From Monocercomonoides exilis PA203 (taxonomy: Eukaryota > Protista > Preaxostyla): DNA of 64,000 nucleotides. This document shows, piece after piece, positions 6,401 through 59,093 of this stretch (position 1 is the first letter of the stretch; every line of letters starts with the position of its first letter). Below the pieces are notes generated by a model, which saw nothing but the letters and a program-made list of their open reading frames with translations, was not told where the DNA came from and searched no databases. The position numbers were made by a program, and so were the translations under genes. Where the stretch lies: positions 124,001-188,000 of the forward strand of contig LSRY02000064.1 in NCBI GenBank assembly GCA_001643675.2, read 5' to 3'.

Positions 6401-9400
6401 CTTCTTCATGGCGCTGAGCATCTGTCTCCAAGTGTCAGTTCATATCACAGCAACACCTCAGAACTGCTATCTCCTCAAAGATCATCCAACTTCCAAACAT
6501 TCTATTCGTCTTCCCATTTGAAAGTGTATGACGAGGTATCTGACTCAGAATTGGACGATTTTGAAGGACTGATGGCAAATTCATACAGTCTTGAAGAGGA
6601 GGAAGAAGAAGAGATAGAAGAAGAGGTGGATGAAGAAAGGAAGACAAATAAGGAAGATACAGAAATGACTGAACGCACAGGGACATCTTACAGCACAGCT
6701 TATTCAACATTATCCTCTCACAACACTCACTCCACAAAAAACATCGTCTCTTCTCCTTCTTTTCGTTCCTCTCGCTCTTTCTATCTGTCTCACTCTCATC
6801 GGCATCTCATGCACCATCACAATCACAATCACAATCATCGTCAGGGGCATCATCAGTTCAATCACAGATCTCATAGAAATATGCTCCATTCGCTTTATTT
6901 GCCAGACAAGCGCTTGCTCTCTTCTTCTTCTGTTGCATTGTTTCCATTGGCTTCTCGTCATTTAACGCATTCAAGCACAAATGCATCTCTTTTGCCCTCT
7001 TGTCTTCTGCCTTCCACAGCAGCAGACGCAGAAATGACTGCAAAAGCAACACAATCATTTTTTGCTCTTTCTCACATTCGCAAACATGTATCGCAGAATT
7101 GGCATCTTTTGACTCCGCTGCATCTGACGCTGTTTATCTCTGCACTTATTCAGTCGATGATGACTACGCCTTTCACTACTGTTCGGTTTATATTCGCCTA
7201 TTTATTCCAGATGAATGGAGGAAGGGGCAATAGATCGTTTTGGAATGAAAAAAGAGAGAAGAATAAAAACGATGAAGTAAAACAAAGTGATGGAATGTCT
7301 TATCGTTCAAAGAGCAAAAATATCAGAAAACGGAAAACAGCTTCTTGTCAGAGTGATCAAGACAGTGACACACAACATTCAGTTTCCTCTCTTTCGTCTG
7401 CCTCTTCTCTTTCATCTTATATCCCCACCAGTGACATTGAAGCACTTCCAGATGATAAGAAGTATAGAATGTTTTATGTGGCAAACGAACATGGCAGTTT
7501 GCAGCAGATTGCAAAGCAGAAAACAACAGATGAAATACGATCAGAGATAAAAGAAGAGAAAAAAAGAGAGAGGAGAAGAAGAAGGAAAAGGAAAATGCGC
7601 AAAAAGATGTACAAAAAAAGATTGTTTGAAAAAATTCACAAGAAAATCAATATTTTGGAAAAATTACTTCAAGTTCCAAAAGGAAAAGCTCTTACAGAGG
7701 GATATGACGATAAAGATGGAATGCAAAGCAGACTGGGAAAAGAAGCTGAGAACAATATTTTTGTTGAATCAGAAGAATCATCATCATCTTCTTCTTCTTC
7801 TTCTTTGTTGTCTTATTGCTTTGATGATAGCGATTCCAATGAAGAAGATTCTTGTTTTTCTTTTCTTCCATTTTTTTCTTCTTCATTCTCATCTTCTTTT
7901 TTCCCATTTTCAATTTCATTTTCTCATTCTTCTGTTCGCTCTCCTTTCTCTTTCAGTGTACCTTCAAACTCTCCCTTTTCCACTCTATTAGATAGACTGC
8001 CTCCTTCTTATCTACCTTCGTTGATATTCTTCATTGGAGCAATTGAATGCGTTATTTCTTTGACTTTGGAGTCTGTGATGGACAACTCATTGTTTGTCAG
8101 AAGTGAGAAAGATGAGGAAGAGATGGAGAAAGAGAAGGCTGTTAGAGAAAGGGCAAGACGGATTGAACTGCTTAGAAGAAGAGCCCAAAGAAGACAAAAG
8201 AAAGAGAGGGAGGAAGAAAAGAGGAGGAAGAAAGAGGAGAAGATTCCAGTTGTTATTACGCAAGAAAACGTAAATGCGCAAAAAGAGGTGATTGAAAAGA
8301 ATGGAGATAACAAGGAAAATGTTATGTCACCACAAGAAGAGAACGAAGACGATGATTTGGAGTCGATATTGTCTACGTTGTCGCGCAGGTTGGATGAAAC
8401 AAAGGAAAAGAAGAGAAAAATTAGAGCAAATAAAGAAAAGGAAAAAGAAAAAGAAAAAGAAAAAGAAAAAGAAAGTGAAAAAGATGACGCAAAGGATATT
8501 CAAATCGAAAATGAGAATCCCAAAGAACAAAGCTCAAAGATCGTAGATAACTATTGCTCAGAAAGCAAAACAATCGTTGAAATTGCAGAGAAACAGAAAG
8601 AAAAGAAGGAAGAACAGAAGTTTTTAATGCCACTGCCACGTCCACCACGCAAATCGAGAACACCTCCAACTGTTTCAACAACTAAAGAAAAAGCATCTCT
8701 AAAAGTTCAGCCATCGTCTGCTTCTTCATCCAAATATCAATCAGGCGATGATAATGATCTGTTTGATGGATATGAAGAACTGATGAGGTTGAAAGGGAAG
8801 TTAGTCGAAGATGAACCGAAGGAAAGTAAAGTGACTCAAGAAGATGATGAAAACAAGAAAAAGAGAGAAGCATCTGAAGGCAAAGCCAAAACCAAAAAGG
8901 GAAAGAAAGGTTCAAAAAAGAAAGGCAAAAAATCAAACAAGGAGAGAAAAGCTGCAGGCAAAGAAAACAGCATTCAAACTGAAGACAATCAAAGTGTTGT
9001 GTCACAAGCACAATCCACATTGTCAGATGAGTCAACGAAGACAAGGCAAACATCAGTCAGCTGCACTCACACTTACAAAAGCCGCAATTCTGCCTCAAAA
9101 GCACATTCGAGTGACAAAAAGCGCAGTCATAAATCAACTTCTTTGTGTTCATATTCTCTTCTTTCCAAGACACCCCCACCTTCTCCTCATCCTCCGTCGC
9201 CTACTTCGTCCTATCGGAGAGTGTCTTCGGCGTCTCCTTCTGCTTCTGCATCTGTTTCTCCTTCTGCTTCGGCTTCTGCTTCTTCTTCACAAAATGACAG
9301 CGTGCCAATCCGCCAGACAATTGCTGGTGCATCATCATCCCACAAATCCAGACGGCCTCCCATTCCAATCAGTTCAAAGGACATTCACAGCAAAGATTCT

Positions 9401-12400
9401 CGTTCTTCTTCGAATTCTTCAGCTGCTTTCGTTTCGCCTGCCAACAGACCCAATCGCTCGCCTCGCAGTCCAACATCCACTTTGTCTTCAACAGCACCTT
9501 CACACTTGTTTTCTCTATCAAACTTTGCTCCATCGACAAACACAATGAAGCTTCCATCTTCACCTTCACCTTCACCTCGCTCCCCTTTTCTCGAAATGAA
9601 CAGACAGATTTTTGTGGAAAATGAAAGCACAGCACAAACAAACAGCCAGAAAATAGAACAAAAATCGGTTCGTGCAGAAGAGAGAAGAAGGAAAGAGAGA
9701 AGCTTGTCGAATTCAACTACAGTGCACGAAAAGCATCTTTCTTTGGAGAAGACAGAAAATGATGAAGACAACGAAAGTGATGTGTCGTTCCGTTCTTCGA
9801 AAAGTTTAGCTTCGACCTGCAATTCAACAGCACTTGATGGTTCTGTTGTCGAATACAGCGTAGACAGAGAGAGTGAGGATAATATCAGTATGACTTCAAG
9901 TAAATTTGATATGTTGAAAGAAGCAGGAGAAGATGAGGAGGAAGAAAAGAAGGAGTTGGCTGAGCAGAAATTGAGCATCAAAAGCCACACTCTCAGCTTT
10001 TTGGAAAACGTTGTGCCAAAAATACATTCATTGTTGCCTTTTCATGTTGCAAACGGAAAATCAATGGAAGAGCCACCATCTTCTATTAATTCGATAGGCA
10101 AAGAAAAATCAAGAAAAAACAAAGCATCTCAATTCGCATCTTCTTCATCTTCTTCTGTGATACCTTCAGCTGGTTCTCATGCGAAAGCAGAGCCATCGGT
10201 TTTGTCTTTGTCACCAATATCGTCCTCGCATACTTCTTCCTCGCATTCTATTTTGAACTCTTCAAATTCTAATTCAACTGACAGCACGATAAGTGACATG
10301 AATAGCTCGCAGAATTCTTCTTTCCCAGTTTCAATGTTTTGTTCCTCTCCTTTCCTGCATTTTCCAGCAGACATATCCACCACATCTACCTCGTCCATCC
10401 TGGAGCACATTCACTTTATCTCACAATCTCTGCAACATTTCTGTAAGATGCCGATTACATTGGAAGAAGAACGATGGATGAGCCAAGAAAAGAGTAATGC
10501 TGAAGACAATGGTCAAAACAAAATTAAAGATGTGGCACAGAACAGCAATTACAAAGACGAAGTGAAAGATAAATCAGCCAATGATGCTCTTTTGATTCAA
10601 TCTTCGACAGTCACTGTTATCCAATATTCTTCTTCATTTTCTTCACCAACATTTCGTTTCCCTGTCAACATTCTGACTTCTTCCCTTTCTCTATCTCCTT
10701 TTCTGATTGTATCACCTTCTGTATCATCAGTAGACCTAACATCCACATGCTGTTTCAATTGCTCCACTGCAGTTTCAAAGATCACTTCTCAACGTCTTTC
10801 ATCTGTTCCATCAACTCAACAACAAACTGACCATGAATGCCTTCAAACAGATTCGATAATTTTGCCTGTTGGAAACTCGATGGTTGAAGAAGTTGATGTA
10901 ATTGGTGCAATTAATTCTAAGCAAATACTTTCGCTTTTCCAGTTTTTGAGGGAACATTTTCCACCTTTCATTGTCTATGTCTTGTTGAATGTCATGATCA
11001 ACAATACATATTCCATATTTTTTCAATCGCTTCAGCCAGAATTAGATTTTGCTTCTTCTTCTTCTTTCTTTTTGAGCAACTCTTTTTTCATTCATCTTCA
11101 GCAAAGCTATCCTTTTTCTTTTCCTTCTCCCTTTTTGATTTCTTCACCTCTTTACTCAGCAAGCCTGTCAGAAACTTATGTTTCTCCGTCTCCAACTGTG
11201 TTATCAGCATCTGCATCTGCAACAACTGCTTCCAAAATGTCTTCTGATAGAACCCCTTCACAAAATCCTTCATTATCGTTATCTTCAAATGCATCGATTG
11301 AAAATAAACGTTTGGGTACTGTTCCAATGGATGTGAACTCTTTGCCTGAAAGCTCAACAAGTTCCATTCAACAGACATTGACAGTTGAATATCCTCTTCT
11401 GATGGAGACAGAAGAAGAAAAAATGGAAAGAGAAAGCGTCATTTTTGCTTCGGAAAGGAGGAAAAAGAAGAAGAGAAGTAATCGAAAGATACAGAAAGAA
11501 AGAATTTCAGATCAAAAAGAGATGGATGAAACCAAAACTTTGGATTCAAACGAGAGAAGTGAAACAGAAAGTGATGAAAAGAATTCAGTTCTCAGTAGAA
11601 AAAGCAGAAAACGGAGAGAATTTGCAGATAATAGATTTAAGAATAAGTCTTTATCCACAAATGGCAAGGAATTACAATCACAAAACAATGATTCTGAAAG
11701 CATAGAAGCTATTTCAAATCATCAGATCGAGCAGAAAGGAAATAAGCACATTGTCAAAATATCTAACAGTCGAGAAACAGACAAAATGCACTCTACTTTG
11801 GCTGTGTCATACGAAAAAGAAGGAAAATATTTTGATGCAGAAATGTTTGATAATGTTTCAATGACACCTTCCTTGATGTCTTACACACGTTTTTATCCGT
11901 TTTCATTGATGGACTCAGAAAGCGATGGAGATGAAAAGAATGCAAAGAATTCGAATAAGAAAGAAGACGATAATAAAAGCCACAGTTATCTCAAAAGAAA
12001 AGAGAGAAGAAAAAGGAAAAGAACGAGTAATGGTTCAAATTCAGCAGGAAGGCATCAACATAAAGATCACAAACCAGATGAGAAAACAAATGAAATAAAA
12101 AATGATTCTCTTGAAGCATCATTGCCATCCTCTGCAAATCATTCTGCTGAATCTTCTCCAAAGTTTATTCTGTCTTCGTCTTCTCCTTCAAATCTATCTG
12201 ATTCTGAATGTTCCACCTCTTCATCCACTCAATCTTCTGCCTCTGATTACTTAAGTGATCAGTTGATCGAGTCTCCTTATTTATACACTTCTTCAGAGCC
12301 TTCTTCCTTCTCTTCCACCCCTGCATCTGATAGCCAAGATTCACATTCTTTTCATTCTTACTCTCGTTCTTCATCTCCTGATTTTTCTGATCAATCATTG

Positions 12401-14806
12401 CCATCGTCATTTTCTTCACATTCTTCTTTTTCTTCTTCTGAGCAAGGAAATGTTTCTTTGTATGCTTCTGATGAACTTTCAATGAGACATGTACTTCATG
12501 CTTCGCATTCAGTAACTCCTGTGGAAGATTCTTTGACAATTCCATCTAATAATACAACAAAAGATCAAAATACTAATTGCTTGTTAAAAGAAGTGCCTGT
12601 AGAATCTCAGAATGCTTCCTCCTCTTCTTCTTCAGCGGACGTGCCACGTGCTTTATCTCCATCTGTTCAATACATCTCTCCAAAAGTTGTTCTTCCTCCT
12701 CCTCCGCTGTCTTTGTACTCATTGGAGCAAACTGTGCCAACCAGTTCTTCTTCGTTGTCGTCTTCTTTGCCTTATTCGCCAATGTCACCAACAAAAAATG
12801 AGTCTACTCCATCGCCTTCTATCAACAAAATGTCACGAAGTGATCTTAAGCAGCTGCAAAAGAAACGAAAAATGAAAGAGAAGGAAAGGAAAATGAAAAT
12901 ATTAAGAGCGAGAAGAGAACGCAAAATGCAAAAAAGAAGAGCAAAAAAGAAGGCGAATGTGGATGAAATGAGTTTAAAAGGATTCATTGTTGGTGTGATT
13001 CGTCGATCTTCCCCTCAAAATGCAAGCTTTTCTCCTTCTCCTTCTTCTTCTTTTGATTCAAAAATGACATCACAAAATTTGAAATCTGATGTGATTTATC
13101 CTCTTTCTTCGTCTGCTTTTTCTCCTCATTTTACTTCTCGCACTCCGTTCCTCATTTCTGGCTATGCAAGGAACAAGCAAACTGCAATGGTACCTTTATC
13201 AAGAATAATCTCAAGCGATATGCAGATTAATACCTTAGCCAGCAAAGGCACATCCCCAACAATGTCGCACGCACACCGCAGTACGAAGGCTCCATTTTCC
13301 AAAGAAAAGCCAATCTCCAGTAGCAGCGCTAAGCTTTCTTTGGTTTCAGAGTTTGGTTCAGTTCTCAATGCATCCTCTTCTTCTTCTGCGTCTGTGCTGA
13401 TATTTGACTATTCTGCTGGATCATCAATGACTCTTCACCATGTTTGCATTCCATCTCTCGCGACAATTTCATCTTTTGCTGCGTTCTCACTTTCATTTGC
13501 TCCTGTTCCGTTACTTCCTTATCCACCTCCAAAAACAAAATTGTATTTTCGCTCCAAAGCTTCGCCGTTGGTTGGAGCAAGGCGATTAACTGTTTCCACC
13601 TCAGTTTCTGACTTGCATTTAGATCCTTCAGATGAAATGTTGCCTGATGATCTAAATAAAAGAAGAGGAAGACGCTTTTCCATCAGCGGAGACAATTCGG
13701 TGGGATTCTTCGAAGAAATATCGAAGCAGAACATGAGGGATGCAAACTTTGAAGGAGAAGAAGTTGAGTTTCTGGATGAAGTTGATAATATTGCAGAAGA
13801 AGGAAACAATCTAATTATGTGGAGAAAAAGGCAGAAGAGAAATTCAATAGATTTTGACTCGCAATACCTGCTGATTGATCGAGCTGAACAGATGCTTATT
13901 GCAAATGGAAACGAAATGGCAAGTTTTTCTGCTAATCTTCCATCGATTTCTCCTTCGTATCAAAATCTTTGCAGCTCATCTCCTTTTTCTTCAAACAGCG
14001 GAACGAACATGAGATATCATCAGAGTTTACATGAGGGATTCACTGAAGGCTCGATTGGATCTCACAATGTTCAATTTTATAGTACTGTTAATCCCACCCA
14101 GAATCCTAATTGGAATTCATGCCGTCAGAATTTACAAATACGAACGTTTCGAAAACAAGAAGACGGTTTCAATCATCAAACTTCGATTTATACAGATAAT
14201 GATTTTACAGCAAAAGATAGAGATCAACGCTTATCGGTTTCTCCATCTGAATCGTACTGTTTATCTCCTCGTGGCATTGCACAAAACACTCAACCATCAC
14301 TCGCAACTTTACCTTCTTTTCATAATCATTCAATTTCAAATGCATCTCTTGGAGCTTCTTCTTCATTTATTCAAGCAAGCAATCATCAATGCGAAGATGT
14401 GAATTTTCAGAAAAGAAAACGTTTGCAGTCATTTAGTGAAATTTTGAATGAAAGAGAAGCCATACAAAAGCAGACAAGGCATGGATTCTATCAGGATGAA
14501 TCAAGAAAAAGGATTGCAAAAGTGGGTGGTACTTATCTTAAAGAGGATTCTTCTCCAACAATGTATGCATCGCAAACTTCAATTGAAAAATCTGCAATTA
14601 GAAAAAATGATTACGAACTGGGCAAACAAACAGAAGGCCAAAAAATTGGCAGTTCAAGTGCTGAACAAAAAATTGGTGAAAAAGAACATAAAATATCAGG
14701 AGATATTTTCGTGGAAGTGGGAGAGTTGGAAGTATTGCCAACTGATATTTTGTTAAGTCTAGCTTTCAATCAAATTGCTGGGATGGATGAGTTCAAAGTA
14801 ATCTGA
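464..14806 (+). CDS. Giant (~4,740 aa) Ser-rich / Glu-Lys-Arg-rich low-complexity protein of unknown function. Probable exons 464-478, 531-779, 854-14806.
   Basis: Stop-free 13.9-kb ORF (872-14806). Phase-0 GT-AG introns 479-530 and 780-853 join ATG 464 (MDSFS|NYQCF...ISISK|QLFDAYLKK) in frame to the long ORF. No recognisable domain. The first small exon is the least certain. Confidence 0.75.
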
Positions 14807-19777: not shown

Positions 19778-21152
19778 TAAAACAACAATTAAAATAAATA
19801 TATATTATGGTTAAAGGATTAAAACAAATAACAAATAATTTCATGTTGATGAAAAGGGCATTTTTAATTTATTTTTATGTCTTTGTCAAGTGAGCCATCA
19901 AGCCAAAAATTAATAGCCTTGGAATTATTGTGAAAAGTTAAATAGGGTGCTTATTTTATCTTTACATCCAAATTTTATCTCAACCCTTTTTTTTGAAACT
20001 TTCTGAAGCTTTTTTCGAGATTAGCAATGGTTTGAAACAAAAAATATATATATTAATGAACAATTTTATCACAATTATTTCCAATTTTCTGAAATTTAAT
20101 TTTTTGAAAAATTTTTGTTCATAAAAATTGTTTTTATTTTAATCATTTTTGAACCCAGATCAAAGGCTTGCTGGCTTTGAAACGAATATTTTGTACCAAC
20201 CGTTTAAAGCCGCAGCATCACAATTCTTTGTTCCTAAATTATTATTTTTTCTTGTTTTTAACTTTTTCAATTAAATTTTTGACCTTTTTTTCTCATTTCA
20301 CTGTTTTTGCTTAAAACTCTATTTTTTATATAAACAAGTGTTTGTGTCAATTTTTATTAAAATTAAAAAATGTTCAAAGTCTTATTAATCGTTTATTTGT
20401 ATTAAATGTTGAAATGAAAAGGAATTGAACAAAAATTTTAACTGGAAAGCAAGTATATATGATTTTTTTGTTATTCAAATTACCAAACATTTACAAACAA
20501 ATAATCATTTAAACATACAGGAATCGTTTTATTTTTATTATGTTTATTTATCATTTCGATAAATTTCAAAGCAAATTCATATGTGTCCTCAAAATCGTGT
20601 TTTTTGAAAAAATTTGTGAAATGAGAAAAAATGTTAAAAAAACAAGTTGAGAAAGTTTAAAACAACCAAATCACATAAAAAAGAAACGATGTATTATGAT
20701 ATGATAGCTTAAAACTTCCGATAAAAAATATTTGCTGGAAAAGCAGCAAGTCAATGATCAAAACATTAAATTATAACAGTCCTTGATCTTTTTGAAAAAC
20801 ATGAAATTATTGGAAAAAAATACAAAATGAGGAAATTGAAACATTTCAAACATTTCTGGTTATTTTTTATTTATCACAGGCATGTGTTAAGCTAAAAGCA
20901 TGACAAAAAAGAAAAAGGTCTTGATAAAGAAAAAAGGTTAAGATAAAATTATAGCCTTAATATTATTAGCTAATGTTTTTTGAGTAACTTTCTCTTTCGC
21001 AAATGTGAATTTTTTTTATTGAATAAGTGAATTCAATAAATTTCTTGTTATTTTCAACTTTTGCTAATACAACAGTGTTTTTAAACATTATTAACATTAA
21101 GCACAAAAGATTATTATTTTTATTCAAAAAAATTTATTATTTATTATTTATT

Positions 21153-21285
21153 GGATGAAATTTGAATAAGACATTTTATTTTGAATAAAGATGGTTTATT
21201 TGAATAAATAGCCTTTATTTCAAATAAAGGCAGTTTATTCGAATAAAGACGGTTTATTTGAAAACAGAGCCCTTTATTTGAGTTA
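21153..21285 (+). repeat. Left terminal inverted repeat: ~19-20-bp periodic array of the palindrome TTTATTCGAATAAA
   Basis: Units tttattttgaataaag, tttatttgaataaa, tttatttcaaataaa, tttattcgaataaa, tttatttgaaaaca, separated by 4-6-bp spacers. Confidence 0.8.
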
Positions 21286-21723
21286 TATTTTATTTTGGGA
21301 TTGGTTGATCAAAAGCTCAAAAGTTGAAAAAAATAACATGTTGACAAATCATTTGAGTGAAGAAAATAATATCTCATTTGTGATTTCCATTGGTTTCATT
21401 TATGATTTTGTTAAGATAAAAAATATAGGAGGCAATGGAATGATAAAAAATTATTTGTAATCGAATCACAAATGGAAAATTTGTCTTTTGTAAATCTATT
21501 TTCCTTTTAATAACTTTTGAATAAGAAGGCTTCTTTTCCAAAAGATTTATCGAGTTTCTTTTTTTAACAATTAAAACGGAAATATTTTTTATCAATATTT
21601 GTATATGAAAAAAAAATGAATCAGGGATAATTAATTTTTCCCCAAATTATCAAATCTTTTGTCGAGCATAAATGATTATTGAAATTTCAATTTTGTTTCT
21701 TCAAATTATCATCAAATGAATTG

Positions 21724-23573
21724 TTACTCACAATTTGACGATTTTCTCACAAGTCTTCTTTGTGAACACGCTCTTGAATTAATTTCTCTTATCTGTTTTT
21801 GTTGAGTTTCCTTTCTCCAGGAAAATGCAGTGACTTTTTGATAAAATATTCCATCAGAGGGTTCCAAATTATGATAATCAATCACAATGTTTGTTAACCA
21901 GCAAGCTATTTTAAAATCTGATGAGAGACATTTGATTCCACCAGTGTATTTTTCGGAAAATCGAAGCCATAATTTTTTTAAACGTCCAAAAAACCATTCG
22001 ACTGGAACACGGCATTTGGCAATCCTTTTGTTAAACTCTTCAATCGATAGTGAGCTTTTTGCGAAAGATGTTTCAAAACTCGATGATGAAGAGCTTGTCT
22101 CAGATAAACTTGAAGGGGAGGGAAAGCATGGAGATGATGAATGAGAGGTTAGCAACGAACACGAAGCAGAAGAATGAGAAGGTGAAGGCGAGGAAATTAA
22201 AGCAATTGAAGAATTTGGAGTAACTGCATTTGATTCCATCGTTAAACTTTGAATTTGCATCTCTGCTTGCATTCTGTAAAATTTATCAGCTATATTTTTT
22301 TTTATTGGTGTAATTAAGCGTAATTCAGTAAAATGACCTTGGTAGCCTTTATCACCCATAATTGCCCATCTGTCAATATTTAGCTCTTTCGATGTTCTTC
22401 TTTTCTCTTCATCTGTCATTTTCAGGTACTCAACGTATCTGTTCATTCCTTGACGAAATAAAGCCACATCATGCAAACCTCCTCTTTCTGCGTTTGAAAT
22501 AAACAATGCTTTGAAAGGAGGCCATGATGATACAGCGACTTCAACTTTCATACAAATAGCGTTGTGATGGCCATCATAGTAATATTGATTTTCTTCGTAT
22601 GGAACATCTGGCTTTGGAATTTTTATGGTTGTGGCATCCACGAGTAAAGCAACATTAGGGAAATCTTCATTCATTTCCTTTGGAGGTCTTGGAGGGATTG
22701 AAAACATCTTTTCCAAGACTGTGAACAGATAAAAACGAATTTCAGCAATGCTCTTGCTCACCAATGTTTGAGAAGTCCCAAGAAACAATCCAATTCTGTC
22801 CACATTCGTTGAACTGGACAGCCATTCCAAATAAATAATAAGCTTGTCATGAACAGTTAAAGCTTGTTTTGGCCCTCTTTTTGGACATGATTTCATTTCT
22901 GATTTGATCAGATTGCCCAATTCGATAATTGTTGATGCCGGAACACGTAAATGTTCATTCCTATCAACAGAAAAAAAATGATCGCAAATGAATCCGAATG
23001 AAACAGGTTTTTCCTCTTGGTTTTCTGAAGGTGTTTCATATTTCTCAATTTTTTCGATTCGCTCATCATTTCTTTTTTGAAGCGAATCAAAATCAGGCTG
23101 CTTTCGTTTTTTTTCAGTTGATCCAATATCAATTTCTTTGTGTATTTTTCTTTTGGCAGTGAACTTGCGAGCTGTCACAATGGGGGAAATCTGATTAGTG
23201 ATCGGACTATCCATCGGGGAGATGGGAATTGTCAATTCATTCGAATCAACTCTTTCTATTTCTTCCTGAATTATTGACTCAACGCGCGGGGTGTCAACTG
23301 CTGACGCTTGCAATGAAGTGGTAAACGAAAACGTTTCTGATAAAGCTGATCCACAGATTGAATGAATATTGGAATTGTGACCATCTGAACTGTTAAATGA
23401 ATGTATTTGAGAAGCCAAAGATGAACAGTTTTTTGTTTTCGCTTTTCTTTAGAACTTGCAAATAAAAGAGAAATAATTTGAAAAAAATAACCACACGCAT
23501 TATCGTCTGTCTCACAAGAATCATGAAATGAACCGAAGAATATAGGAAAAGTTTGGTTAGAACTCTGTATCAT
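21724..23573 (-). CDS. DDE_Tnp_4-family transposase (HARBI1/ISL2EU-like) with N-terminal HTH. Probable exons 23573-23497, 23446-21724.
   Basis: Catalytic triad motifs LLVDAT, IMGDKGYQG and FNKRIAKCRVPVEWFFGRLK. Also GGLHD..LF and HTH-like LTVHDKLIIYLEWL...LGTSQTLVSKSI. A 50-nt intron (23447-23496, GTGTGG...AAG) supplies an in-frame ATG at 23573. Confidence 0.85.
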
Positions 23574-24199
23574 TTTCCTAATATTCGCTTATTTCAATTT
23601 ATGGGATAAGCTCTTTTCTTGAATTGTTGCCTAATATTGCATAAGGATAAAATAAAGAAATAAACATTTCAAAAATCAAAATGTTTGCAAATAGATAACA
23701 CCGAATAAGGAAATGAATTAATAAATGCAAATTTCTAATTTCTATAATAGAAACAATAACTTTGAAAGGTGATTATTCAGAAATATTATATTGAAAACCA
23801 AGATTTTTCCATCAACATATTTGAAACATTTAACCACAGTTCGCTCAGAGTGACTAATATTCCAAAGAAGAAAATGGTTTTTGAAAAGAGTATTAGTAGT
23901 TGAAAAGAAAGCATCTGAAATCATTCGGAGATCTGTCACAAGAGTCAAATGATTTGTCTTGACCGTTGAATGGATTCTTCTTCTTTTGAATGAAATATAT
24001 GTCCTTTTATATTATTCAATACAAAAACAACGGAATCAACTTTGAAGTTTGTCGATTTCATCTTCTTATTTGTTCACAGAGTTTTCTCAAAAGCATAGGA
24101 AGACAACCCTTCCTTTACAATTTTTTCAAGCTATATTTTATGCTTCAAAAGCACCAAATTTTCTTCATTTTTTTCAATAATAATAGCTAATTATTCCAG

Positions 24200-25722
24200 G
24201 TGCGCTTTTTGGTTTCACATCCTTGGGCATCGTTCTGGAAAAGCATGCTGAACATCAATCCGGGCTCAGCCTACAAGACGCTGTCCATCAATGCATTGGC
24301 ACTCATCCAAAACGAGTTTGACCTGATATCCTGCACAGTCGTCTCCAGCAGCAGCGCTGAAATGACAACAATCACCTTTGCATCAGCCATTCTGGACAAC
24401 ACCCGCAGTTGTGTTGTTCTCAGCACAGGCAGGCTGAGTTTTAACCACCTCGATACTTCTGTTGCTGGAGGAGCCTTTCTTCGCCACTTCGAGCTCATCT
24501 CCTCCTCCACGCCTCAAGGCCAGCTTCTGTTCGGAAACTGCTCATTTGCTCCAGCCTGCACTCCTCAGATTGAAGGGACACTTGTTCGTGCTGAAGGAGG
24601 CAGTGTGCAGATGGAAGGGTGTGTGTTTTGTGCTTTTGCTCCCTCTTCGTCTCTCGCGTGCATAAGCAGCTCTCTGGAGATGAACACAACTGCATTTCAA
24701 GGGAGCCGTGCCTTGTGATGCGATGCAGGTGGGATGATTGGGGTGAGTCTGGAGAGCGGGTGCAATCTGAGTGCTGCTGGGTGCGAATTCACCCATGGCG
24801 AGTGTAATAAGAAGACAGGCAGAGGAGGTGCGCTGTATGTGAAGAGCACAGAAGCAGATCCAGCTGGGCAGACATTCCTTTTGAAGGCAGTCACTTTTGA
24901 GAGCAACGATGCGTCCAAAGGCAGAAACATATATGTGTACTTCTTCAACATCAATACGAGTATATCCCCAACCACCTTCCACCTGATGTTCCAACTGTTT
25001 ATCAATGATCCTCATGCGTTTGTGGGGAGCGACCAAACATTTGCAGATGCTGATCTGTTCCGCTTCCTTTTTCCATACGCATCCAGCGAGATCCACCTGC
25101 CCGATGCTGGATTTGAAATTGCAAGGTGCGGATCGCCGATCGAACCCTTCCGATCCTTTGTGGCTGGCTTCGAGCACATGGACGCCTCGGCTTCGCACAA
25201 AACGTTCTGCTTCAGCTGCCCAACACACTTCACTTGTCCAGAAGACTTGCCGAATTTCATATTCCAGTTAATACCCACTACGAAGCAACGTAGTCAGTGC
25301 TGCTGTTCCAGAAAGATTGTCAGGTGTCCAATTCATTCCTCCTGAACAGTCGGAGTCTCTCCCTTTCAGCGATCTCCCTCCATGATTCTGATGGGTTCAG
25401 CAACGAAGTCAGCGCGATCATCCTCAGCAAGCAGGGTTCATTGGCCCTGGACTAGAGTGCTTTCGACTCACATACAAGTATCACTTTGCTTTGTGCTAAT
25501 TCATGTGCTGTTGTGGAAATGGAAAATCTCGCTTGCACGCAGTATGAGTTGAAAAACGCACATCTCGTGTGTTTGATGTTTCTCCTTCATGCAGGATTTG
25601 CAGGCACATTCGATGCCATCCACATTTCTTCATGCAGCCTGTCCAACTGCTACCATGTCGAAGCAGCAAGCAGCACCAACCGCTCTCCCAATTCCCATTT
25701 CTCAATTTCCATCTTTGGATAA
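24200..25722 (+). pseudogene. Decayed internal fragment of a giant beta-helix surface-protein gene, inside the transposon
   Basis: GRGGALYV..FESNDASKGRNIYV..AFVGSDQTFADADLFRFL..GFEIARCGSPIEPFRSF aligns with FGRNNARTGRNMFL..LFVGRDKVFTGVDLLCFL..GYDVKRCGRAVEPCRTF of the 46227-58385 protein. It has an in-frame TGA (24716-24718), a frameshift near 25290 and a TAG (25453-25455). No signal peptide or TM. Confidence 0.8.
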
Positions 25723-26737
25723 ACTCTTATAAATGTGTGCAAGCAGTGAAGAAGTTAGAAATTGTTAGGAGGAAGCAAGAGTGTGCGGTTGAAATTGTTG
25801 TGAAAGAAATAATTTTTGGATGAGAAGAAGAAACATCAAATAAGAGTAAGTAATTTGGTGTCATTGTTTGAGCAGCTAATAACTGGTAAAATATTTCATT
25901 TCCGCACCGATCCGGTGGATGAACTTCACTGGAACAGGAATGAGTGGCTGTGTGTATCAGAATACAAAGTTGACAGAAAAATAACTCATGATTGTGAGTG
26001 GATAAAATGCAAAAGCTGTGCAAAAAAATATATATATATATTTTCGTAATGTGAAAAAAATGAATCAAAGCAAATAAACAATAAACATATCCATATTATC
26101 ATTAAAAGAAGTTTTCAAACTATTCTTAACGTTGAATCGCAAATGATGTATAAGGAATGCGTAATTTTTACATATTCTTTTGGATTTTAATTTTCGTGCT
26201 AACGTTCAAATAAGGAATAAATAATATTGCTCACTCAACAGCAGTTGGATGAGCATGCTCAAATGTTAACGGCTTTTTTGTTAAATAACTGTCCTAATCG
26301 AAAAAATTGTGGATAATAATTTCAAAAAATCATCATCAAAAAATAAAGATTGTGAAACAAGATGAGTGCAAAATAAAGAAGGACGTATTAATATACATTA
26401 TCAATCAGTTTGGCGAATAACCTTTTCAACATGAAATAATCATTCCAATGCGAAAAAAAGGAAAAATCAATGATTTGGATTTTATTTTCCAACTTATGTT
26501 GAGATCAAAATTGATAAAGATGATTATTCAATAAAAAACCTCGAAAATATGTGATTAATAATACAAATAAACTTATGTAGCATGAAAATTTTCATTAAAT
26601 ATCTTCAAAAAAAAGTTTTTCTTTGATTTTCACGAAAAAAATGTTTGATCACTTGTTTTGAATTTTTTTATTAGTTGTGAATAACGCATTAAAACATCGA
26701 AAACATGAACAAATTTTCCATAACAATATCTATAAAC

Positions 26738-26875
26738 TCTTTATTCGAATCTTTCATGGTTGATTCGAGAAAGCAGACGTTTATTTGAATAAACTGCCTC
26801 TCATTCAATTAAAAGGGGGTTTATTCGAATAAAGTCAGATCATTCGAATAAAAACTTTTTATTCGCATTTCATCC
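26738..26875 (-). repeat. Right terminal inverted repeat (degenerate mirror of the left TIR)
   Basis: tttattcgaat, tttatttgaataaa, tttattcgaataaa and cattcgaataaaa units, ending ...attcgcatttcatcc. Confidence 0.8.
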
Positions 26876-29570
26876 ATTATTTATTATTTGTTATTAAAAA
26901 AAAATTTTTTTTTTTTTTTTTTTGTGAGACAAGCTTTTCGAGTTTTTTGCTATTTCATTTTTGAAAAACTTTATCATTTCGCTTTTGTTTTTGATTAAAT
27001 GTCTGATTATTTCACAATGCAATTATTTGCATTTGAAAATTTCTGTTTAAAGTATTGTTTTTCTAATGTGACTGTAATTTTTGCTTTTTGTATTTTATTC
27101 CACTCATTATTTTCGGGGAAAATTTTTTTATTTAATATGGGTGATTATTTTTCTAATCATTTTTTTTCTTTCATTCTTTTCGATTGGAAATTTTTCCTTG
27201 AATGTTTGGAAATGAACACTGAAAGTTGAACAGGCATATTCAACAGATCATCGTCTTTATTTCAGCTCTCACATTTGTTTTTTTTTTAAAAGTCGTGATG
27301 AATTCAGCATTAGAATTCAAAATTTCTTCCCAATGGTCAACAACACTTAAAAAATCAATACACCGAAAAAAGTTATGATTTCAAAAATTATCGCCCATAT
27401 ATTATTATTTTTTCTAAATGAAGAAAATGTTTAATTTTGAAGTTCATTAATGATTTGCATATTTTTGTGAATTCAAGCGAACGATCCTTCCAATTTGACG
27501 AAATATGAAATCATTGCATGTTGGACCTTTTTTTATTATCAAATTTTGCATTTGGACAATATTATACAAATCTATTGGCTGAATTCTCCAATGAACATTT
27601 TTATCAATGAACATGTGTTTAAACATTTGCAACTTTTCAAAAAGAAAAACACAAATTGATATTTTTTCGAAACCATTTTTAACGAGAATAAAAGTTTTTT
27701 ACTGATAAGATATAAGAAAAAAATTGGAACAAATTGCATTTTTATTCAATACAGAACAAAATCTTCAAAATATTTCTTTCAATTTGTTATGTTTTATTTT
27801 GTGAAATCAAATGAATTCTGATTGGTTTTTTTCCCTGATATTTCGTTAATTGTTGTGTATTAAAACATTCATTTTCAAAGAATATAGGTCCATTCTTCCA
27901 TTAATTTGTTATTCAATAAGATAAATCTGATCAAGACGATGACTTTAATTGATTAAAAATAATTATTTCATTATTTTTTTAATGAATGCAAAAATTATTA
28001 AGCATGACAGACAAAACTTCAATGAGAATTTGAGAGCAAATGCCAAATTATTTTTCGAGAAGTTTAATTTGTTTGATTTGACAAACGAAACAAAAATCTC
28101 AAATTTCGTTTTTATATCTGTACCAAATATTGAACATTTTTTATGAAAGAAAAATTGAATATGACAATGTTTAAATAACAATTTCGTTGAAATTTCTTGA
28201 GCAAGAACAGAAATTTGAACAAAATCAAAGATAAGGGTGATTATTTTTTAAAATCACATCTTTTTTCGGTCAGCTAATTCTTAAAAATTATGTTTGTCTT
28301 TGGGAAAAGATTTTGTATTCGAATGCTGAATTAAACACAAATGTTTAATGGACAAATGTTATTACTCATATAAAGATGATGATGCCATTTGTTAGTGTTT
28401 TCATTTATCAGTATTTTTCTTTTTATGTTCAAGATAAAAAATTTGAACCAAAATTTTTGAAAGAAAAAATATGCTTACAAAAATAATCACAACTTTTGAT
28501 TATCTCAAAATTTACACTTTCATATTAAATAAAAAAAAAGGCAAATAATGTAAATCTGTGGTTAAATATTTTTCTTCAAACGTTATCATTGACAAATTAT
28601 ACACTTTTAATTGACTATTTGAGATCAATAACACAATAAAAATATGTCCATTTTTTGACATTCGTGAAATGTTAGAAAACTTTATGCTTTGATTTCAACG
28701 ATGCCTGCTTACGGATATGAAAATCAAATTTATTTTGAAATCTGAGAAAGTGTAATAAAGTTATGAGTGAAGCAATTTTTTTGTGCTTCGTGCAAAAAAA
28801 GCTTGAAAGTCCGTATTTTCCCCCAAATCAACATATTGAAGAAATTTTTTGGAACAACAAAGGTTTTTATAAAAAAATGTTCACGAAAAAGACAAAAAAA
28901 ATGAAAATAACTCATTTTTCAAAAAAAGAATAATCCCATCAATTTTAAAAAGTGTGGATGTTTCAGACTTTATTGATAAATGATACTCATTGTTAATACA
29001 CAATAAAAATATTTCCATGAGAGAAATGTCTGCTGTACATCAAATACGATTCTTCATTCAGTTTTCAAGAATTTCCAATTTCATTTCAATGATTCGAGTA
29101 CAAATAATAGTTATGAAAAATCTTGTTTTCTAAATAATTTGCAATTTTCTTTCCGTTTGACATTTTTGTTTTCATTCTATTTGAATTCAATTGAGATAAA
29201 TTTTATTGTTAAAAAAAAAATAAAATAAACAATTTTTTTTTTTGAGTTTTACAGAGTATTCAATGAAACTTCTTTGAAAAATACAAACGAAGAGTGAATT
29301 TGTCCGTTATTTATTGAATTTGTATATTTCGACAAAACAAATCAAACAGACAATTATCACACATATTCTTTTTTCTTCTTGATAATAAACTGTCCTTTTT
29401 TGTAGAAAAACATGATCGATTCACAAGTTTTTAGAAAAATTAACATTCAATACTGTTAATGAGTATTAACAAGAGAATTCACAAAGATTAAAGGTGATAT
29501 AATTTTTATTTCTTCAAAGTTAATGTTTTCACTATCATTAAACCATATTTAATAATAAATATCAGTTATT

Positions 29571-32500
29571 ATGATCCATTTGTTGCAATTATTAAACATT
29601 GTATTATTTTTAAATGATGTGTCAATTTGTGTCACAACATTTACAGTGAAATTTGCAACAGGGAACGATGAACATTGCCTTGCTTATCACAAAGAGCCGT
29701 GCAAAACCTTTTCTGCATTGTTTCAAATTCTAGATGACAAATCTGAAGTTGTAATTTTTCCGGAAAATGTTACCGAAGGAGTGGTTCCATTTTCATGGGA
29801 TACTGCGAAGGCTTCAATTAAATTCTCTCAAACTTCTGACAAAAGTTCTATTTGTGCATCTCCAACAGAAACTAAGCCTTTTCTAACAATTTCAAATGTA
29901 AATTTGTTTGCGCTCCATTTTTGCATTTTCTTATTTTTTTACTCTTTGCTATTTACACCATTTTCAAAAACCGAAAAATACAATAAAATTCAACCAAAGG
30001 ATAAAATTTCAGAAATGCAATTTTTATGCATCTATTTCTCCAATTCTCGAAATTTCTCATGGAAGTCAAGTATCATTTTTTGCGTGTACTTTTTTAGGAG
30101 GAGGAGGAGAGAAAAAAGGATCTGGACCTCTTGTCAAAGTTTTTGATTTTGATGAATTTTATGTATATTTTTCGGATGAACGAACAAAGACAATTTTAAC
30201 TACCTTTGGAGAACGTACAATCGATGGACAAGGAGCAGGCCTTTATATTGATAAAATAAAAAAGAGTTATATCACAGGCTCAAATTTCACGTTTCTAACA
30301 GCAACACAAGGCAGTGGACTATTTGTAGGAAAAGATGTTGAATCATTGTCATTGGAAAATTTGACAGTGAGCAACACTAAAGCTATTGGGGAACAGGATA
30401 ATGGAGGAGGAGCAGGCATTTACATTTCTTCTGTAAGTACTGAACTTGAAGCAAAAGAAAAAGCTGTTAAATTTTCTTTGTGCAACTTCACGGACTGCGA
30501 TTCTGGAACAGGAACAGGAATGGAGCGAGGGTTTGGCGGATGCGTGTACACAGGGCGTTCTATCACATGCAGAGAATGCACTATGAAAAACTCTCATGGA
30601 AGACGGGGGAGTTGTATTTCTGCAAACGGAAGAGGCCTCAAAGAGGGGCAAGAGTGCTTGATCCAAGCATGTCATTTCGAAGGCATGTGGAATTCTAACG
30701 CGAAGGACGAAGCCGCCGCAGAAGTGCTTTTACATGTCCTGGCATTCGAAGTGCTTAATGTGTCTATTTATGACCGAGCTCCAAACCATTTTATGAATCA
30801 AGCCTCAAGTCTTACAACTGCTGGAATTTTTTGTGCTGATGTGGATAAAATCTATATCTCATTCAGCGTCTTTGAGAATTGCTTTGGAAGCGATGGTGGG
30901 TGCATTACAGCTGAGCCAGTTGCTGATTGGCAAAACGAGATGAGTTTAATGGAGATTTTGGATTGCGAGATGAAAGGCAACGAGGAATTCGGAAAACATT
31001 CACAAAAAGGTGAGCCAAGTAAATCTGGCGCAATGATCTATGCAAAAAATGTGAAAAACGTGACAATTTCTATGAAAGACGAAGACAAAAAAATGATTAT
31101 TTCGAGCCATACTTCACTTGTAAACGAACGGAGCGGAGGAATTGTGATTGAAGATGCTGATTTGTTACTTCTTAACAATACAAAGTTGGACACATTAAAT
31201 GGAATAAGTGGAGGGGCTATCTTTTTGAAGCAGAATATCAAATCAGTTGAATTAATTGATGTTACAATTGAACACTGCACGTCCATTCAAAGAGATAAAA
31301 ATGACCTGAGTGGAAGAGGAGGAGCAATTTTCATTTCAGATTTTGTTCCCAAATTTGCATCTAATTTTGTCAATCTTGCTGATACGTCTTATTCCCATGG
31401 CTCATTTGCCAATGATCCGTCCACTACAATAAATATAACAGGTTGTCATATCAATTATTGCTCAGCCACAGAAGGTGCAGCTATCTTTATCGAAACTTGC
31501 AAGAGCGATGGAGCTCAGAGAAAGAAACTGTCAATTTCATACAGTGACTTTAGTAGAAACAAAGCCAGCTCAGACGGAGGAGCTATTATGATACGAGAGA
31601 AGAAAAATAGAAGCCAAACAAACGAAGAAGATGTTTATTTTGAAAACTCAACTGCACAGCAGATGAACAAGAGAATGAGGAATGAAGTCAACTATTTGCA
31701 CTCAATTACAAATTCCAAGTTTTCATTCAACGAATGTAAAGCGAAAATTCAGAATGTTGCTGTGAATTCGAATAACTGGCCAATCACACCATGTGGGAGT
31801 GCAATATCAATTATCGGAGCTGAAGATTTAGCAGGTTCTGCGTCTAACGAGCAAATAGAATACCTTCTTTTATCCTCATCCACAAGCTATAAAAATAACA
31901 CACATTCTGCCTTTTATGCAAAAAAAGGCGCAAAAGTGAAAAGTGATGGTGATACATTTGAAAATAACATTGAAAAAGACAAAAATAACATGGATGTTTT
32001 AATTGACATTACTTGCGAAAAGTCGAAAGTTATTGTCACAAACCCAAAGAAAGGAAATCCCCAGCGGCTGTGTGATGAAAGCTGCAGTAAGCTTTCTACC
32101 TCTGAATCTTCTGCATTGAAGTGTGAGTTTACACCATCAGAGGACATTACACCAAACTATACAACAGTTGTGATACAAAAGGGTTCAAAGCTCCCTGTTA
32201 TTGAGTTCAAGGGGAATGGTTTGTATCCTTTGCACACGCCAATTCTGTGGATAGGGAAAAGTGAACGGACAAATGAAAATTCAAAGGATGGAATTACAGC
32301 CGAATTGGATTCAAAGAAGGAATCAGATAGCTCCTCACAATATGTGTTCTCTTCAAAAGGAGAAATTGATCTCTCAAAACTTGGCGCTTCTCTCCCCTCA
32401 ACGCTGTTTCTTCATATTTCCGTCGATGATGGAGAAAGCTGGTCAAAAGGAATGCAAATCAGCATTAAAACTGAATCTGAGAAGGAAAAAAAATCTTTCC

Positions 32501-32622
32501 CAGGATATGGAATAGCTCTGATTGTTATAGTATGTGTTGTGGCAATTAGCACTGTTGCTGTTATTGCAATTGTGTATGTGCTTCGGAAAAGAAAGAATGG
32601 TTACAAATCTTTCTCGAAGTAA
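29571..32622 (+). CDS. Polymorphic-membrane-protein-like (GGAI/FxxN, right-handed beta-helix) type I membrane protein. One intron at ~29906-29999.
   Basis: Signal peptide MIHLLQLL; GNDEHC...EPCKT motif; repeated GGAIF/GAGIY/FSRNKA; C-terminal TM IALIVIVCVVAISTVAVIAIVYVL followed by RKRKNGYKSFSK. A GTTTGC...AAG intron reconciles the two overlapping ORFs. Confidence 0.8.
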
Positions 32623-49200: not shown

Positions 49201-52200
49201 AACTGACTCTCGTTGATCTGCGATTGAATGCTGAAGCAGCTCACAAACACATCGCACCCGACCGCTGCTTCATTCCCCATGAAGCTCATGTTCCCAAACA
49301 AAAACTGCAGATCCCCTGTCTCCTTGCTCGCCAAATACACCCCTCCGCCCTTCCCTTCCTCCAAGCTGCTGCAGCACCGCATCATCTCGCTGTTCAGGAT
49401 CTGCATCTGCGACCCTGCTCCCATCATTATTCGCATCGCACCTCCCCTGCCAGACGCACTAGCCCGACACTCTGTGAACGTCGAGCTGTTCACACAAACA
49501 CAAACAGAAAGGTCAGCACTTGTGCTGATGACACTCGAGCAATCGTCTGACTTGTGAACAGACAGGAACTGGCTCTTTTCCACCAGCACACTTCCTTCCT
49601 TTTTGCTCATCCCGTTGCTTCTACAGGAAGTCTGAATTTCACTTTCACTGACACTGATCAACGAGTCGATGGATTCATCGATCAGCGACACTCTCAGCTC
49701 TGAAAACACACACTGCGAAATATCATCAACCACAAACACACTCGCCCCAAGGCTTGACGAGGCAATGTTCAGTTTGTGCACAAACAGCGAGCCATTCACA
49801 GATCGAACAAACGAACATCCAGCAGCACTTTCATTTTCTTCGCTCCCTTTCCATTCACAGTTCTCGAGCGAAGCATTCCCTTTTTCTATCTCCATAACCA
49901 CACTGGCCGTGCCATCAATCAGAGCGGTTGCCCTGAAGCATATGTTTGTGCAGTTCAGCTCATCACAAGCACACAGAAAAGAATCTCTTGTTGCTCCACT
50001 CTTCCTCCCAAAAACAAGTTCACTTCTCACTCCCTCAGCTTCATCATCCCCAGAACAGATCGAAAAGTGCGACAGCACATACTCATCGCTCACATGCGCA
50101 CTCTGCCCCACAACCAATGTATGCTGCTCGCCTGACCCAGGAATGTGATTCATCCCTTCCCAAAACGTTCTGCACGGCTCCACTGCTCTTCCACACCTCT
50201 TCACATCATAGCCATCAGCACTCACATGAACCACATCGCTTTTGAAATCCTCCAAAAAGCACAGAAGATCAACCCCTGTGAACACCTTGTCCCTTCCCAC
50301 AAACAAGTTTCCATCATCCTCCTCTTCCTCATCTGCTTCACCAAAAACCTCACAGTCAAATGTCGACTCCTTCACTGAGCTGTTCAAGTCGCCCCCCACC
50401 AAAAACATATTTCTTCCTGTGCGAGCATTGTTCCTCCCAAATTTCAGCGAAATAAACCGAAATGGCTCACTCGCCTCATCACTCGAGCAGTCGATGAACG
50501 CAAACCCACCAAAACCCTCGCTCAACGAACATTCACACCCAACAATGCTCGACGAGTTCACAATCACAAACCCTTCTTCGCTCTTTCTCTCAACAAATAC
50601 CGCTCCTCCCTTCTTGCTCGTTCCTGCTTTCACATTCGTGATGTAGCACGACTGCATCGACACAGAAGAGTGCAGCTGCAGCGCTGCACACAAAACACTC
50701 ATCGTGCTCATGCTGCACTCGCTCAGATGCACTTCTTTCCCCACAGACTTCACCAAACACGAATCTACTGATTCAGCTTCACAAAACACACACTTCTCAT
50801 ATCGCACACAACCAGACTGTAAATACATCAGCGCCTCCTGCTCCACGCTCAACAATGCAGAAACCTCAAAACCAATCAACGAAAACGTGATGTTGCCATC
50901 CATATCCAGCACTCCCTTTGCACTCATTCCATCTGCCTTCCCATTCGGTACAAACACCATCTTCACTCCCTTCTCATTCTCTCCTCCGCCTTTTTCTCCA
51001 CTTCCAATCCACATCTCATTTCTCAACGAGAAGCACTCCCCAACCTCCACCTTGTCAGCAATCACCAGCCTTCGCGAGGGAGACTCGTCCAGATGTTGCA
51101 ACCCCATCCCCAACGTGCCACACGGATGCATGCTCGTCCCACACCCGACAACATCCACCCCCTGTGCTCCCACAACCACACTTGCCGAGCAGTACTCCAC
51201 AAGAAACAGCAAAAATTCCACACTCTCTCCAAAATTCTTCCTGTCTCTCCCTTCCATCTCAACCACCACCTCACCATTCTCGTCAAACACACTCACATTG
51301 AAATTGGATGCACTCACACTCTCGTTCAGATCGAAACACACAAAATAGATGTCTCTCCCCTCAAACGCCTCATTCTCTCCAAACACCACCTCCGAAAACA
51401 ACACTCCTCCTTCCCTCTCTCCTTCCACCTCCACATAGATTCCCCCACCAAGCCTGCTTGCTGCATCCACTTTGCACCCTTCAATTGTTGCATTCGCAAC
51501 TGTCACCATCCCTGCCTCCCCCATTTTTCCATGGACTGCCCCGCCATTCCCTTCCCTCAAAACACATGACCCAACTTTCGTTCCATTCCCAATCACAATC
51601 GACCCTCCTCCCTCCACATGAACGCTTCCTTCCCCACAGCACTCAACCCCACACACTTCACACCCTTCAAACCTGCAACTCGCTCCAACACCATCCACCA
51701 CCACAATGCTCCCTCCTGCTGATACTCCCTCAATCCTCACCTTCCTCAACACTGCTTCTCCCTCCACCATCTCCACAATCCCTCCTCCTCCCACAAAACA
51801 TATCTCCTCAAACTGGCTCTCCTCAATCCTCACCCTGCTCCCCAGTCCCTTCACAACCCATTTCCCGCACCCAACACCATTCTTTTTTCCGCTCACAAAT
51901 CGGCATCTCACAGCATTGCACTGCCCAATTGCTCCACTCACCACACAATCCTCCTCGCTGCTTCCCTCGTTGTTCATCGGCAAAACAACACACAGCGAAG
52001 ACAGTGTCAGCTGCGTTAGCATCGTCCCTTCTTTCATCACAAACTTCGCATCTCTCCCAACAACCAATCGCTGCTCTTCTTCGTTCCCTTCAACAGTCAA
52101 CGACTCTCCTCCCCGCTCAATCACTCCTTCAACCGCTGTCTCTCCAAGCAGTCTGATGCTCGTTTGCCTTTCTCCCATCCTCGCCAGCCCGTTGTCAACT

Positions 52201-58385: not shown

Positions 58386-59093
58386 TTTTGAACTTTTGTT
58401 GTTGATCACAACCTTTATCACACATTTCATTTCACCCTTAATCGTCTCACATCACCCTCACAAATAATACCTTTCCTCCTTCATTTTGCCAAGGCATCTC
58501 ACCGCAATAAGAAAAACACACCAGCACAAACACAAAATAAATACAGATCAGAATTCGTTTTTTGGATGTCCCACTGGAAATAACATCGGCTGTGAGCTTT
58601 TGAATGCGTTTTCGATTGGCTTTGCAACTTCTTTTCTTCCCTTTTATTTTCTCCTTCTCTGCCTTCAAACAAAAAACACTCCTCAAATGTCCAAGGGGAT
58701 GATTCTTGCAAAATATAAAATTATAAAGTCAAAATTGAAAAATGAAACAATAAATAAATCAAAGAATTAAAAAGAAAATAAAGAAAATAAGGAATGGACG
58801 AAACTTCATTCCCTTGCCTCAATCGCTGCTGTCCCAGCTCATAGCTCAGCAATCACAAAACGAATCCTTTTGCATTCTTTTCTGCACTCCACCCCACTCC
58901 ACTCCAAAGTCATGCTCCCATGCCAGCCTTCCGCTCTTTCCCAACTTCACATACCCAATGCTTCAATGCTTCAATGCCCGATTGCCCAAAACCAATCATT
59001 CATTGCAAATCTGCACCATTCAACCAAGGCAAAATCATGAAACAGCTTCTTCATCATCATAAGAGCACTCACACCTCCTCACGCTCCATGAGC

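Follow-up and report, generated by a model that had tools for sequence, protein, structure and literature searches.

A putative PHIS transposon of Monocercomonoides exilis carrying an apparently dead receptor-kinase gene fragment

How did a transposase gene and a GC-rich piece of the host's giant receptor family come to lie between one pair of inverted ends, and does their joint movement contribute to the growth of that family? These questions are raised by a 5.7-kb locus (21153-26875) in a 64,000-nucleotide stretch of contig LSRY02000064.1 of the gut protist Monocercomonoides exilis (assembly GCA_001643675.2), referred to here as the window, which an earlier reading of the letters alone (the original prediction) had described as a Pack-type Harbinger/ISL2EU-like transposon that could help to expand and shuffle receptor modules. 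By its sequence features we assign the element to the PHIS (Harbinger-superfamily) cut-and-paste DNA transposons, and we consider it probable that this is a PHIS transposon, Pangu-like in its ANT target, carrying an old and dead receptor-gene passenger that was captured by an ancestor.

The inverted ends at 21153 and 26875 agree at 9/9 and 15/18 terminal bases and are 73% identical over 96 nt. Each is an array of a 14-bp palindrome at a spacing of 19-20 bp, with about 6-7 copies in the left terminal inverted repeat (TIR; 21153..21314, + strand, the array running to about 21280) and 4-5 in the right TIR (26780..26875, - strand). Such a terminus pair with a 3-bp duplication occurs once in the 20-30 kb interval of the window, compared with none in 30 shuffles. 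The putative target-site duplication is ATT, at 21150..21152 within an ATT/ATTT-rich tract on the left and at 26876..26878 on the right. We identified three further copies (together with the window copy, family A) on three other contigs, L006, L008 and L009, each holding the same cargo without the transposase in ~3.3 kb. The copies on L006 (reverse complement of 4616-7947, 3332 bp) and L008 (5669-9010, 3342 bp) have both ends with ATT on both sides, while that on L009 has kept the cargo and the right end and lost the left. Immediately beyond the right end all four copies have ATT, which at L008 and L009 lies in unique sequence, and the flanks of the extra copies differ from locus to locus. The length of the duplication is fixed at 3 bp by L008, whose right flank is unique sequence; an apparent 10-bp Mutator-like duplication in the window was rejected as a product of the tandem ATT/ATTT flank. 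Identity to the non-autonomous copies is 89% over the 162 bp of the left end, the right TIR is 90-96% identical between copies, and the AT-rich right arm (25871..26779), with no recognisable second open reading frame (ORF), is common to all copies at 79-88%. The recurrence of these ends, of the ATT duplication and of the cargo at four loci, each on a different contig, identifies one mobile unit, and in this respect the prediction of a Pack-type element with captured receptor-family DNA was borne out. No tRNA gene was present at any locus examined, and an Rfam search returned no match. A 790-bp insertion (5667-6455) bounded by inverted ends interrupts the L009 copy; its duplication is near-perfect and 8 bp long, a length that makes it Merlin-like.

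In the short copies a 520-bp AT-rich spacer stands in place of 21315-24215, and their cargo reaches about 100 bp further 5′ than that of the window. We rejected the possibility that they are plain deletion derivatives, as the spacer has no homology to the long copy above that of shuffles. Variant contigs, assembled from four DNA runs of one sample and thus not independent of the genome assembly, span the whole element including transposase and cargo, with transposase variants at about 89%, and at 21152 four of them continue into different flanking sequence. In some, the cargo is joined to the spacer on the transposase side (23959 to 24562; 24112 to 24200), so that other transposase-coding copies probably hold the cargo as well.

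The main exon of the transposase (21724..23418, - strand) comprises 564 open codons (annotated as 496 aa) and matches Pfam DDE_Tnp_4 with an E value of 5e-13. The catalytic triad D261, D356 and E474 is invariant in an alignment of 12 homologues and the open frame looks intact, so that the claim of inverted ends enclosing both an intact-looking DDE_Tnp_4 transposase and a GC-rich fragment stands. Upstream, sequence inspection suggests a 50-nt GT..AG intron (23447..23496, - strand) that would place a short first exon (23497..23573, - strand, ATG at 23573) in frame, and the sister transposases described below have a similar short N-terminal 'FFG' segment ahead of an intron-like stretch; the two exons were considered one at a time. 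A structure model of the protein has a helix-turn-helix-like bundle and an RNase-H-like core, with a disordered insertion rich in Ser (aa ~396-455) ahead of the catalytic E; residues 1-106 are also disordered. Comparison of folds gave DDE transposases and integrases as the best matches, all at E>0.001. Similarity to IS5 is weak, and a PDB search by sequence returned no match. Together the IS5-like DDE_Tnp_4 transposase with its D-D-E residues, the TIRs and the short AT-rich target duplication are the features of a PHIS element, although its present mobility is inferred. The Ser/Pro-rich insertion between the second D and the E (window 22054-22233) varies from ~60 to 280 aa across homologues and is present in families A, B, C and E and in four metagenome homologues, and absent from the proteins P0013-P0015. 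A metagenome scan returned distant short contigs only, of which L011 is too short to reveal ends or cargo.

The cargo (24216..25870, + strand, the right limit being approximate) is a ~1.65-kb fragment with a GC content of 48% compared with 27% in the adjoining arm. It was predicted as a GC-richer piece of 1.5 kb; the composition holds, while the size is corrected upwards and the fragment is broken by stops and frameshifts. It corresponds to the second-to-last ectodomain repeat module, a ~350-aa beta-helix-like repeat, of the giant receptor-kinase family, and look-alikes of this repeat fall in beta-helix, Chlam_PMP and DUF1565 clusters, which we take as a lead only. Paralogy to the late modules of a giant protein nearby was likewise correctly seen, but the relationship is distant: the matching stretch at 50064..51449 (- strand), outside the element and inside an intact gene for a 4067-aa receptor kinase (46227-58430), has 25-29% protein identity to the cargo and no match at the DNA level, and this gene was therefore rejected as the donor. 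The four family A cargos are 57-66% identical to each other in protein, whereas the best match among 614 modules, taken from about 125 intact receptors, reaches 36-40% at most. In a FastTree phylogeny of these modules, from which rows of <100 aa were left out, the cargos group together in a single long-stemmed clade (support 1.0), and the cargo appears to be one old capture; the tree that the original prediction had called for thus united the cargos, but led to no donor. A representative search with the cargo returned giant receptors at 24-37% and two short ORFs at 58%, both of which are cargo of other copies; a region search using the nearest giant receptor gave 36-40% at best, and a length-limited homolog search with the cargo ORF gave no match. 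Protein searches list cluster representatives only, and a closer donor may be hidden behind them.

The cargo looks dead, and from its sequence we assign it no present protein function. In the window it is interrupted by stops at 24716 and 25453, a 1-bp deletion near 25276 and further lesions after 25720, and no signal peptide, membrane segment or kinase is found within it. A number of lesions recur: the stop at 24716 in the window and L008, that at 24665 in L006 and L008 and that at 25522 in three copies, together with 1-bp deletions, of which those at 24626 and 25623 are each present in three copies and those at 24493 and 24872 each in two. These common stops and deletions indicate that the family amplified or recombined with its cargo already broken. 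Within 24230-25272, changes private to one copy are synonymous in 20 of 78 cases (expected fraction 0.256), as under neutrality, while differences shared by two copies are enriched in synonymous changes (20/47, p 0.008), which points to formerly coding sources of the shared haplotypes. Pairwise ratios of nonsynonymous to synonymous differences (pN/pS) are 0.54-0.70, where the null gives about 0.82 (p 0-0.08). A functional cargo ORF in the autonomous copy was considered and rejected, its private changes being neutral (4/17 synonymous) even though it has the fewest lesions of the copies.

The copies are recombined mosaics. The 252 informative sites fall into 50 runs, compared with 146 in shuffles (minimum 121), and blocks of about 58-67% identity alternate with blocks of 86-93%. 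The window copy is closest to L008 at 24230-24560 (90% vs 66%) and to L009 at 25690-25870 (86% vs 57-58%). On the simplest reading, two or more coding paralogues would have supplied the haplotypes and element copies would later have swapped patches.

Anatomy and what is known of the family suggest the following history. The palindrome arrays at the two ends are presumably the binding sites of the DDE transposase, and insertion would be directed to ATT/AAT sites, often in ATT-rich tracts. An ancestor may long ago have acquired about 1.7 kb of internal sequence of a receptor-kinase gene, probably through template switching during gap repair, and the fragment would have persisted as the fixed, dead passenger found in both the 5.7-kb transposase-coding and the 3.3-kb transposase-less copies. 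Ectopic recombination would account for the exchange of patches visible as mosaicism. The deep alternative haplotypes would have diverged while coding, and probably come from two or more paralogues of a receptor subfamily now lost or unsampled. Three points weigh against this history. The coding signal is modest, absent in 25279-25860 and drawn from four non-independent copies; the 520-bp spacer has no match in the long copy, so that the short copies did not arise by simple deletion; and no donor gene was found in searches of cluster representatives, which weakens the case for the proposed capture and for the proposed origin of the haplotypes.

The alternative that survives best is that receptor DNA is retained by selection for a benefit to the element, such as a host-like camouflage that protects it from silencing, or a cis-acting sequence 5′ of the transposase. 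This reading draws on sister elements, which were fetched by transposase homology alone with cargo disregarded. Their transposases are 44-54% identical over the alignment and each lies in a TIR element of its own: family B on L003 (418-10194) and L004 (1452-10234), with an ATT duplication and AG ends; family C on L002 (4925-10124), with the same duplication and ends; and family E on L001 (1885-10967), with AG ends and a duplication of AAT/TAT (one mismatch). A different receptor piece lies 5′ of the transposase in 3/3 of these families, which is more than the background of about 5 receptor-family matches in about 155 kb outside the elements would predict (a chance of roughly 1 in 100), although the families are not independent. 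The pieces of B and E are N-terminal and on the same strand as the transposase, whereas those of C (juxtamembrane) and A (mid-ectodomain) are on the opposite strand, and these orientations track the transposase tree, in which A groups with C and B with E (support 84-89). Capture of genes as an anti-silencing device has moreover been proposed for plants and Drosophila (PMC13534243). Related families may however reflect just one or two old captures, and two such captures followed by turnover would also fit the tree. The receptor family is, besides, the largest in the genome, with 332 tyrosine-kinase-like genes (PMC6759080), and a large share of the unclassified repeat fraction overlaps it (PMC8767320), and at ≤40% protein identity to intact genes the family A cargo is too distant for sequence mimicry today. 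We therefore regard a benefit to the element as improbable. The broader proposal, that several M. exilis transposon families keep a receptor piece in a fixed slot by selection, either for such camouflage or within a two-way gene-conversion network that diversifies receptors, we hold to be doubtful.

A number of further features were observed at these sister loci. The L004 element contains a nested young element (4195-6713; 180-bp ends, 99% alike) with receptor-family fragments at 5167-6036, and on L003 a further TIR pair (10732-14392; 28 bp, 96%) surrounds a receptor-family fragment at 13114-13894. Copies of families A and B lie 18 bp apart in one ATT-rich tract (L004 1433-1452, equivalent to 7947-7966 of the reverse complement of L006), just downstream of an intact receptor-kinase gene. 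A more distant transposase on L007, for which no element ends were found, has a receptor fragment 3′ of it. The protein P0013 at this locus (8001-11191; 764 aa, annotated as 'putative nuclease HARBI1') joins the transposase to the receptor fragment across ~580 bp of AT-rich DNA and is probably a gene-model artefact, although a fusion transcript of transposase and receptor is conceivable.

The original prediction had gone further in proposing that the element transduces modules and so expands and shuffles the receptor family; in a variant of this idea, the copies would act as a silent donor archive for gene conversion of intact receptors. The cargo is indeed one whole repeat unit of a modular protein, and such elements occur in large numbers and undergo recombination. 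On L010 an intact gene has DNA identities of 73-75% to the family B cargo and 89% to the L007 fragment, and in these cases sequence may flow between elements and living genes. Neither ends nor arms of an element were found next to this gene, however, and for family B identity alone gives no direction. In family A the cargo is fixed, broken at shared sites and without a close relative among the intact receptors, none of the 614 modules exceeding 40%; copies with the same TIRs and a different cargo, which the original prediction had envisaged, did not appear, as all four hold the same module. A role for the transposon in building or shuffling receptor genes is thus not supported, and we judge this explanation very unlikely. 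On L010 homology to the family B cargo continues for 700 bp (9306-10001) ahead of the start annotated for P0028, a gene model that is probably cut short at its 5′ end.

A chance arrangement, in which two independent miniature inverted-repeat transposable element (MITE) halves or a solo transposase happen to lie beside a receptor pseudogene already in place, is suggested by ends only 73% alike and by a low-complexity flank that leaves the duplication ambiguous from the window alone, but can be practically discounted, since L006 and L008 repeat both ends around the same cargo with different flanks and ATT duplications, and L009 the same cargo with the right end.

Just to the right of the transposon (27141-28490) the window contains a decayed MITE-like inverted-repeat element with arms of ~200 bp that are 76-78% identical in patches. 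Two other coding stretches, for a 904-aa protein with a repeat-rich ectodomain and a C-terminal membrane-like segment (29908-32622) and as an ORF of 4644 codons (872-14806), have no match to the cargo.

A PHIS transposon with an old passenger, the reading we favour, adds a metamonad to the range of both Pack-type capture and ANT-target PHIS elements, here with transposase-coding copies that carry cargo. It helps to explain the overlap of the M. exilis 'unclassified repeat' fraction with kinase genes, and indicates that short 'MONOS' gene models such as MONOS_5540 and MONOS_14420 are transposon cargo and not genes. Should receptor DNA 5′ of the transposase be confirmed in every related family and tied to silencing or receptor diversification, this would represent a new transposon-host interaction.

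Among known systems, PIF/Harbinger elements are defined by a TWA target and a Myb ORF, ISL2EU by an AT target with THAP and YqaJ, and Pangu by an ANT target and ends that start with AG or GG (PMC4482050, Han et al. 2015). The first two share with our element a DDE_Tnp_4 transposase, an AT-rich target and ends starting with G, and ISL2EU also GG ends and long TIRs. The duplication is neither TWA nor AT, however: ATT borders every end in families A, B and C, and the left flank is ATT in 3/3 copies with a left end, where the A|AT|T site of ISL2EU would give AAT. No Pfam match to Myb/SANT, THAP or YqaJ was obtained in any internal ORF tested, and neither a Myb/SANT second ORF, whose absence had been noted in the original prediction, nor the YqaJ second ORF of ISL2EU is accordingly present among them. 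The Harbinger superfamily was therefore correctly named, whereas the labels ISL2EU and PIF/Harbinger proper are not supported. In its ATT target and its GG ends (AG in the sister families) the element resembles a Pangu-type PHIS. The ANT duplication, inferred from flanks, is ATT in A, B and C and AAT/TAT in E; TIRs start with GG in family A and AG in B, C and E; and a DDE transposase with weak IS5 similarity is common to both. Pangu TIRs are however 11-40 bp long and accompanied by a motif-less second ORF, whereas here an imperfect TIR of about 95 bp encloses a host pseudo-fragment and no intact second ORF, and the modelled transposase has its helix-turn-helix-like bundle and Ser-rich insertion. 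Pangu was not reported from metamonads in PMC4482050.

Pack-MULE, Pack-CACTA and Pack-PIF are known in maize and rice (PMC8903248), multicopy Pack-TIRs in animals (PMC8277862) and cargo in Turmoil-1 of C. elegans (PMC2572040). As in these Pack-TYPE elements, a GC-rich host coding fragment has been moved and amplified between TIRs in a multicopy family with non-autonomous members. Of its parentage the gene family can be named, the best intact module among cluster representatives being 36-40% identical. Pack-TYPE elements are defined as non-autonomous, which describes the 3.3-kb copies on L006, L008 and L009 but not the window copy with its open transposase, and transposase-coding copies here hold cargo too. 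Our elements differ also in that one cargo is present in all copies of a family and that related families have all taken pieces of one host gene family. In this last respect there is a parallel with the gene-capturing telomeric retroelements of Drosophila (PMC13534243): although those are LINEs whose captured pieces of piRNA-pathway genes measure 140-235 bp, are 76-95% identical and have a demonstrated small-RNA link, there too autonomous elements have repeatedly captured one class of host gene.

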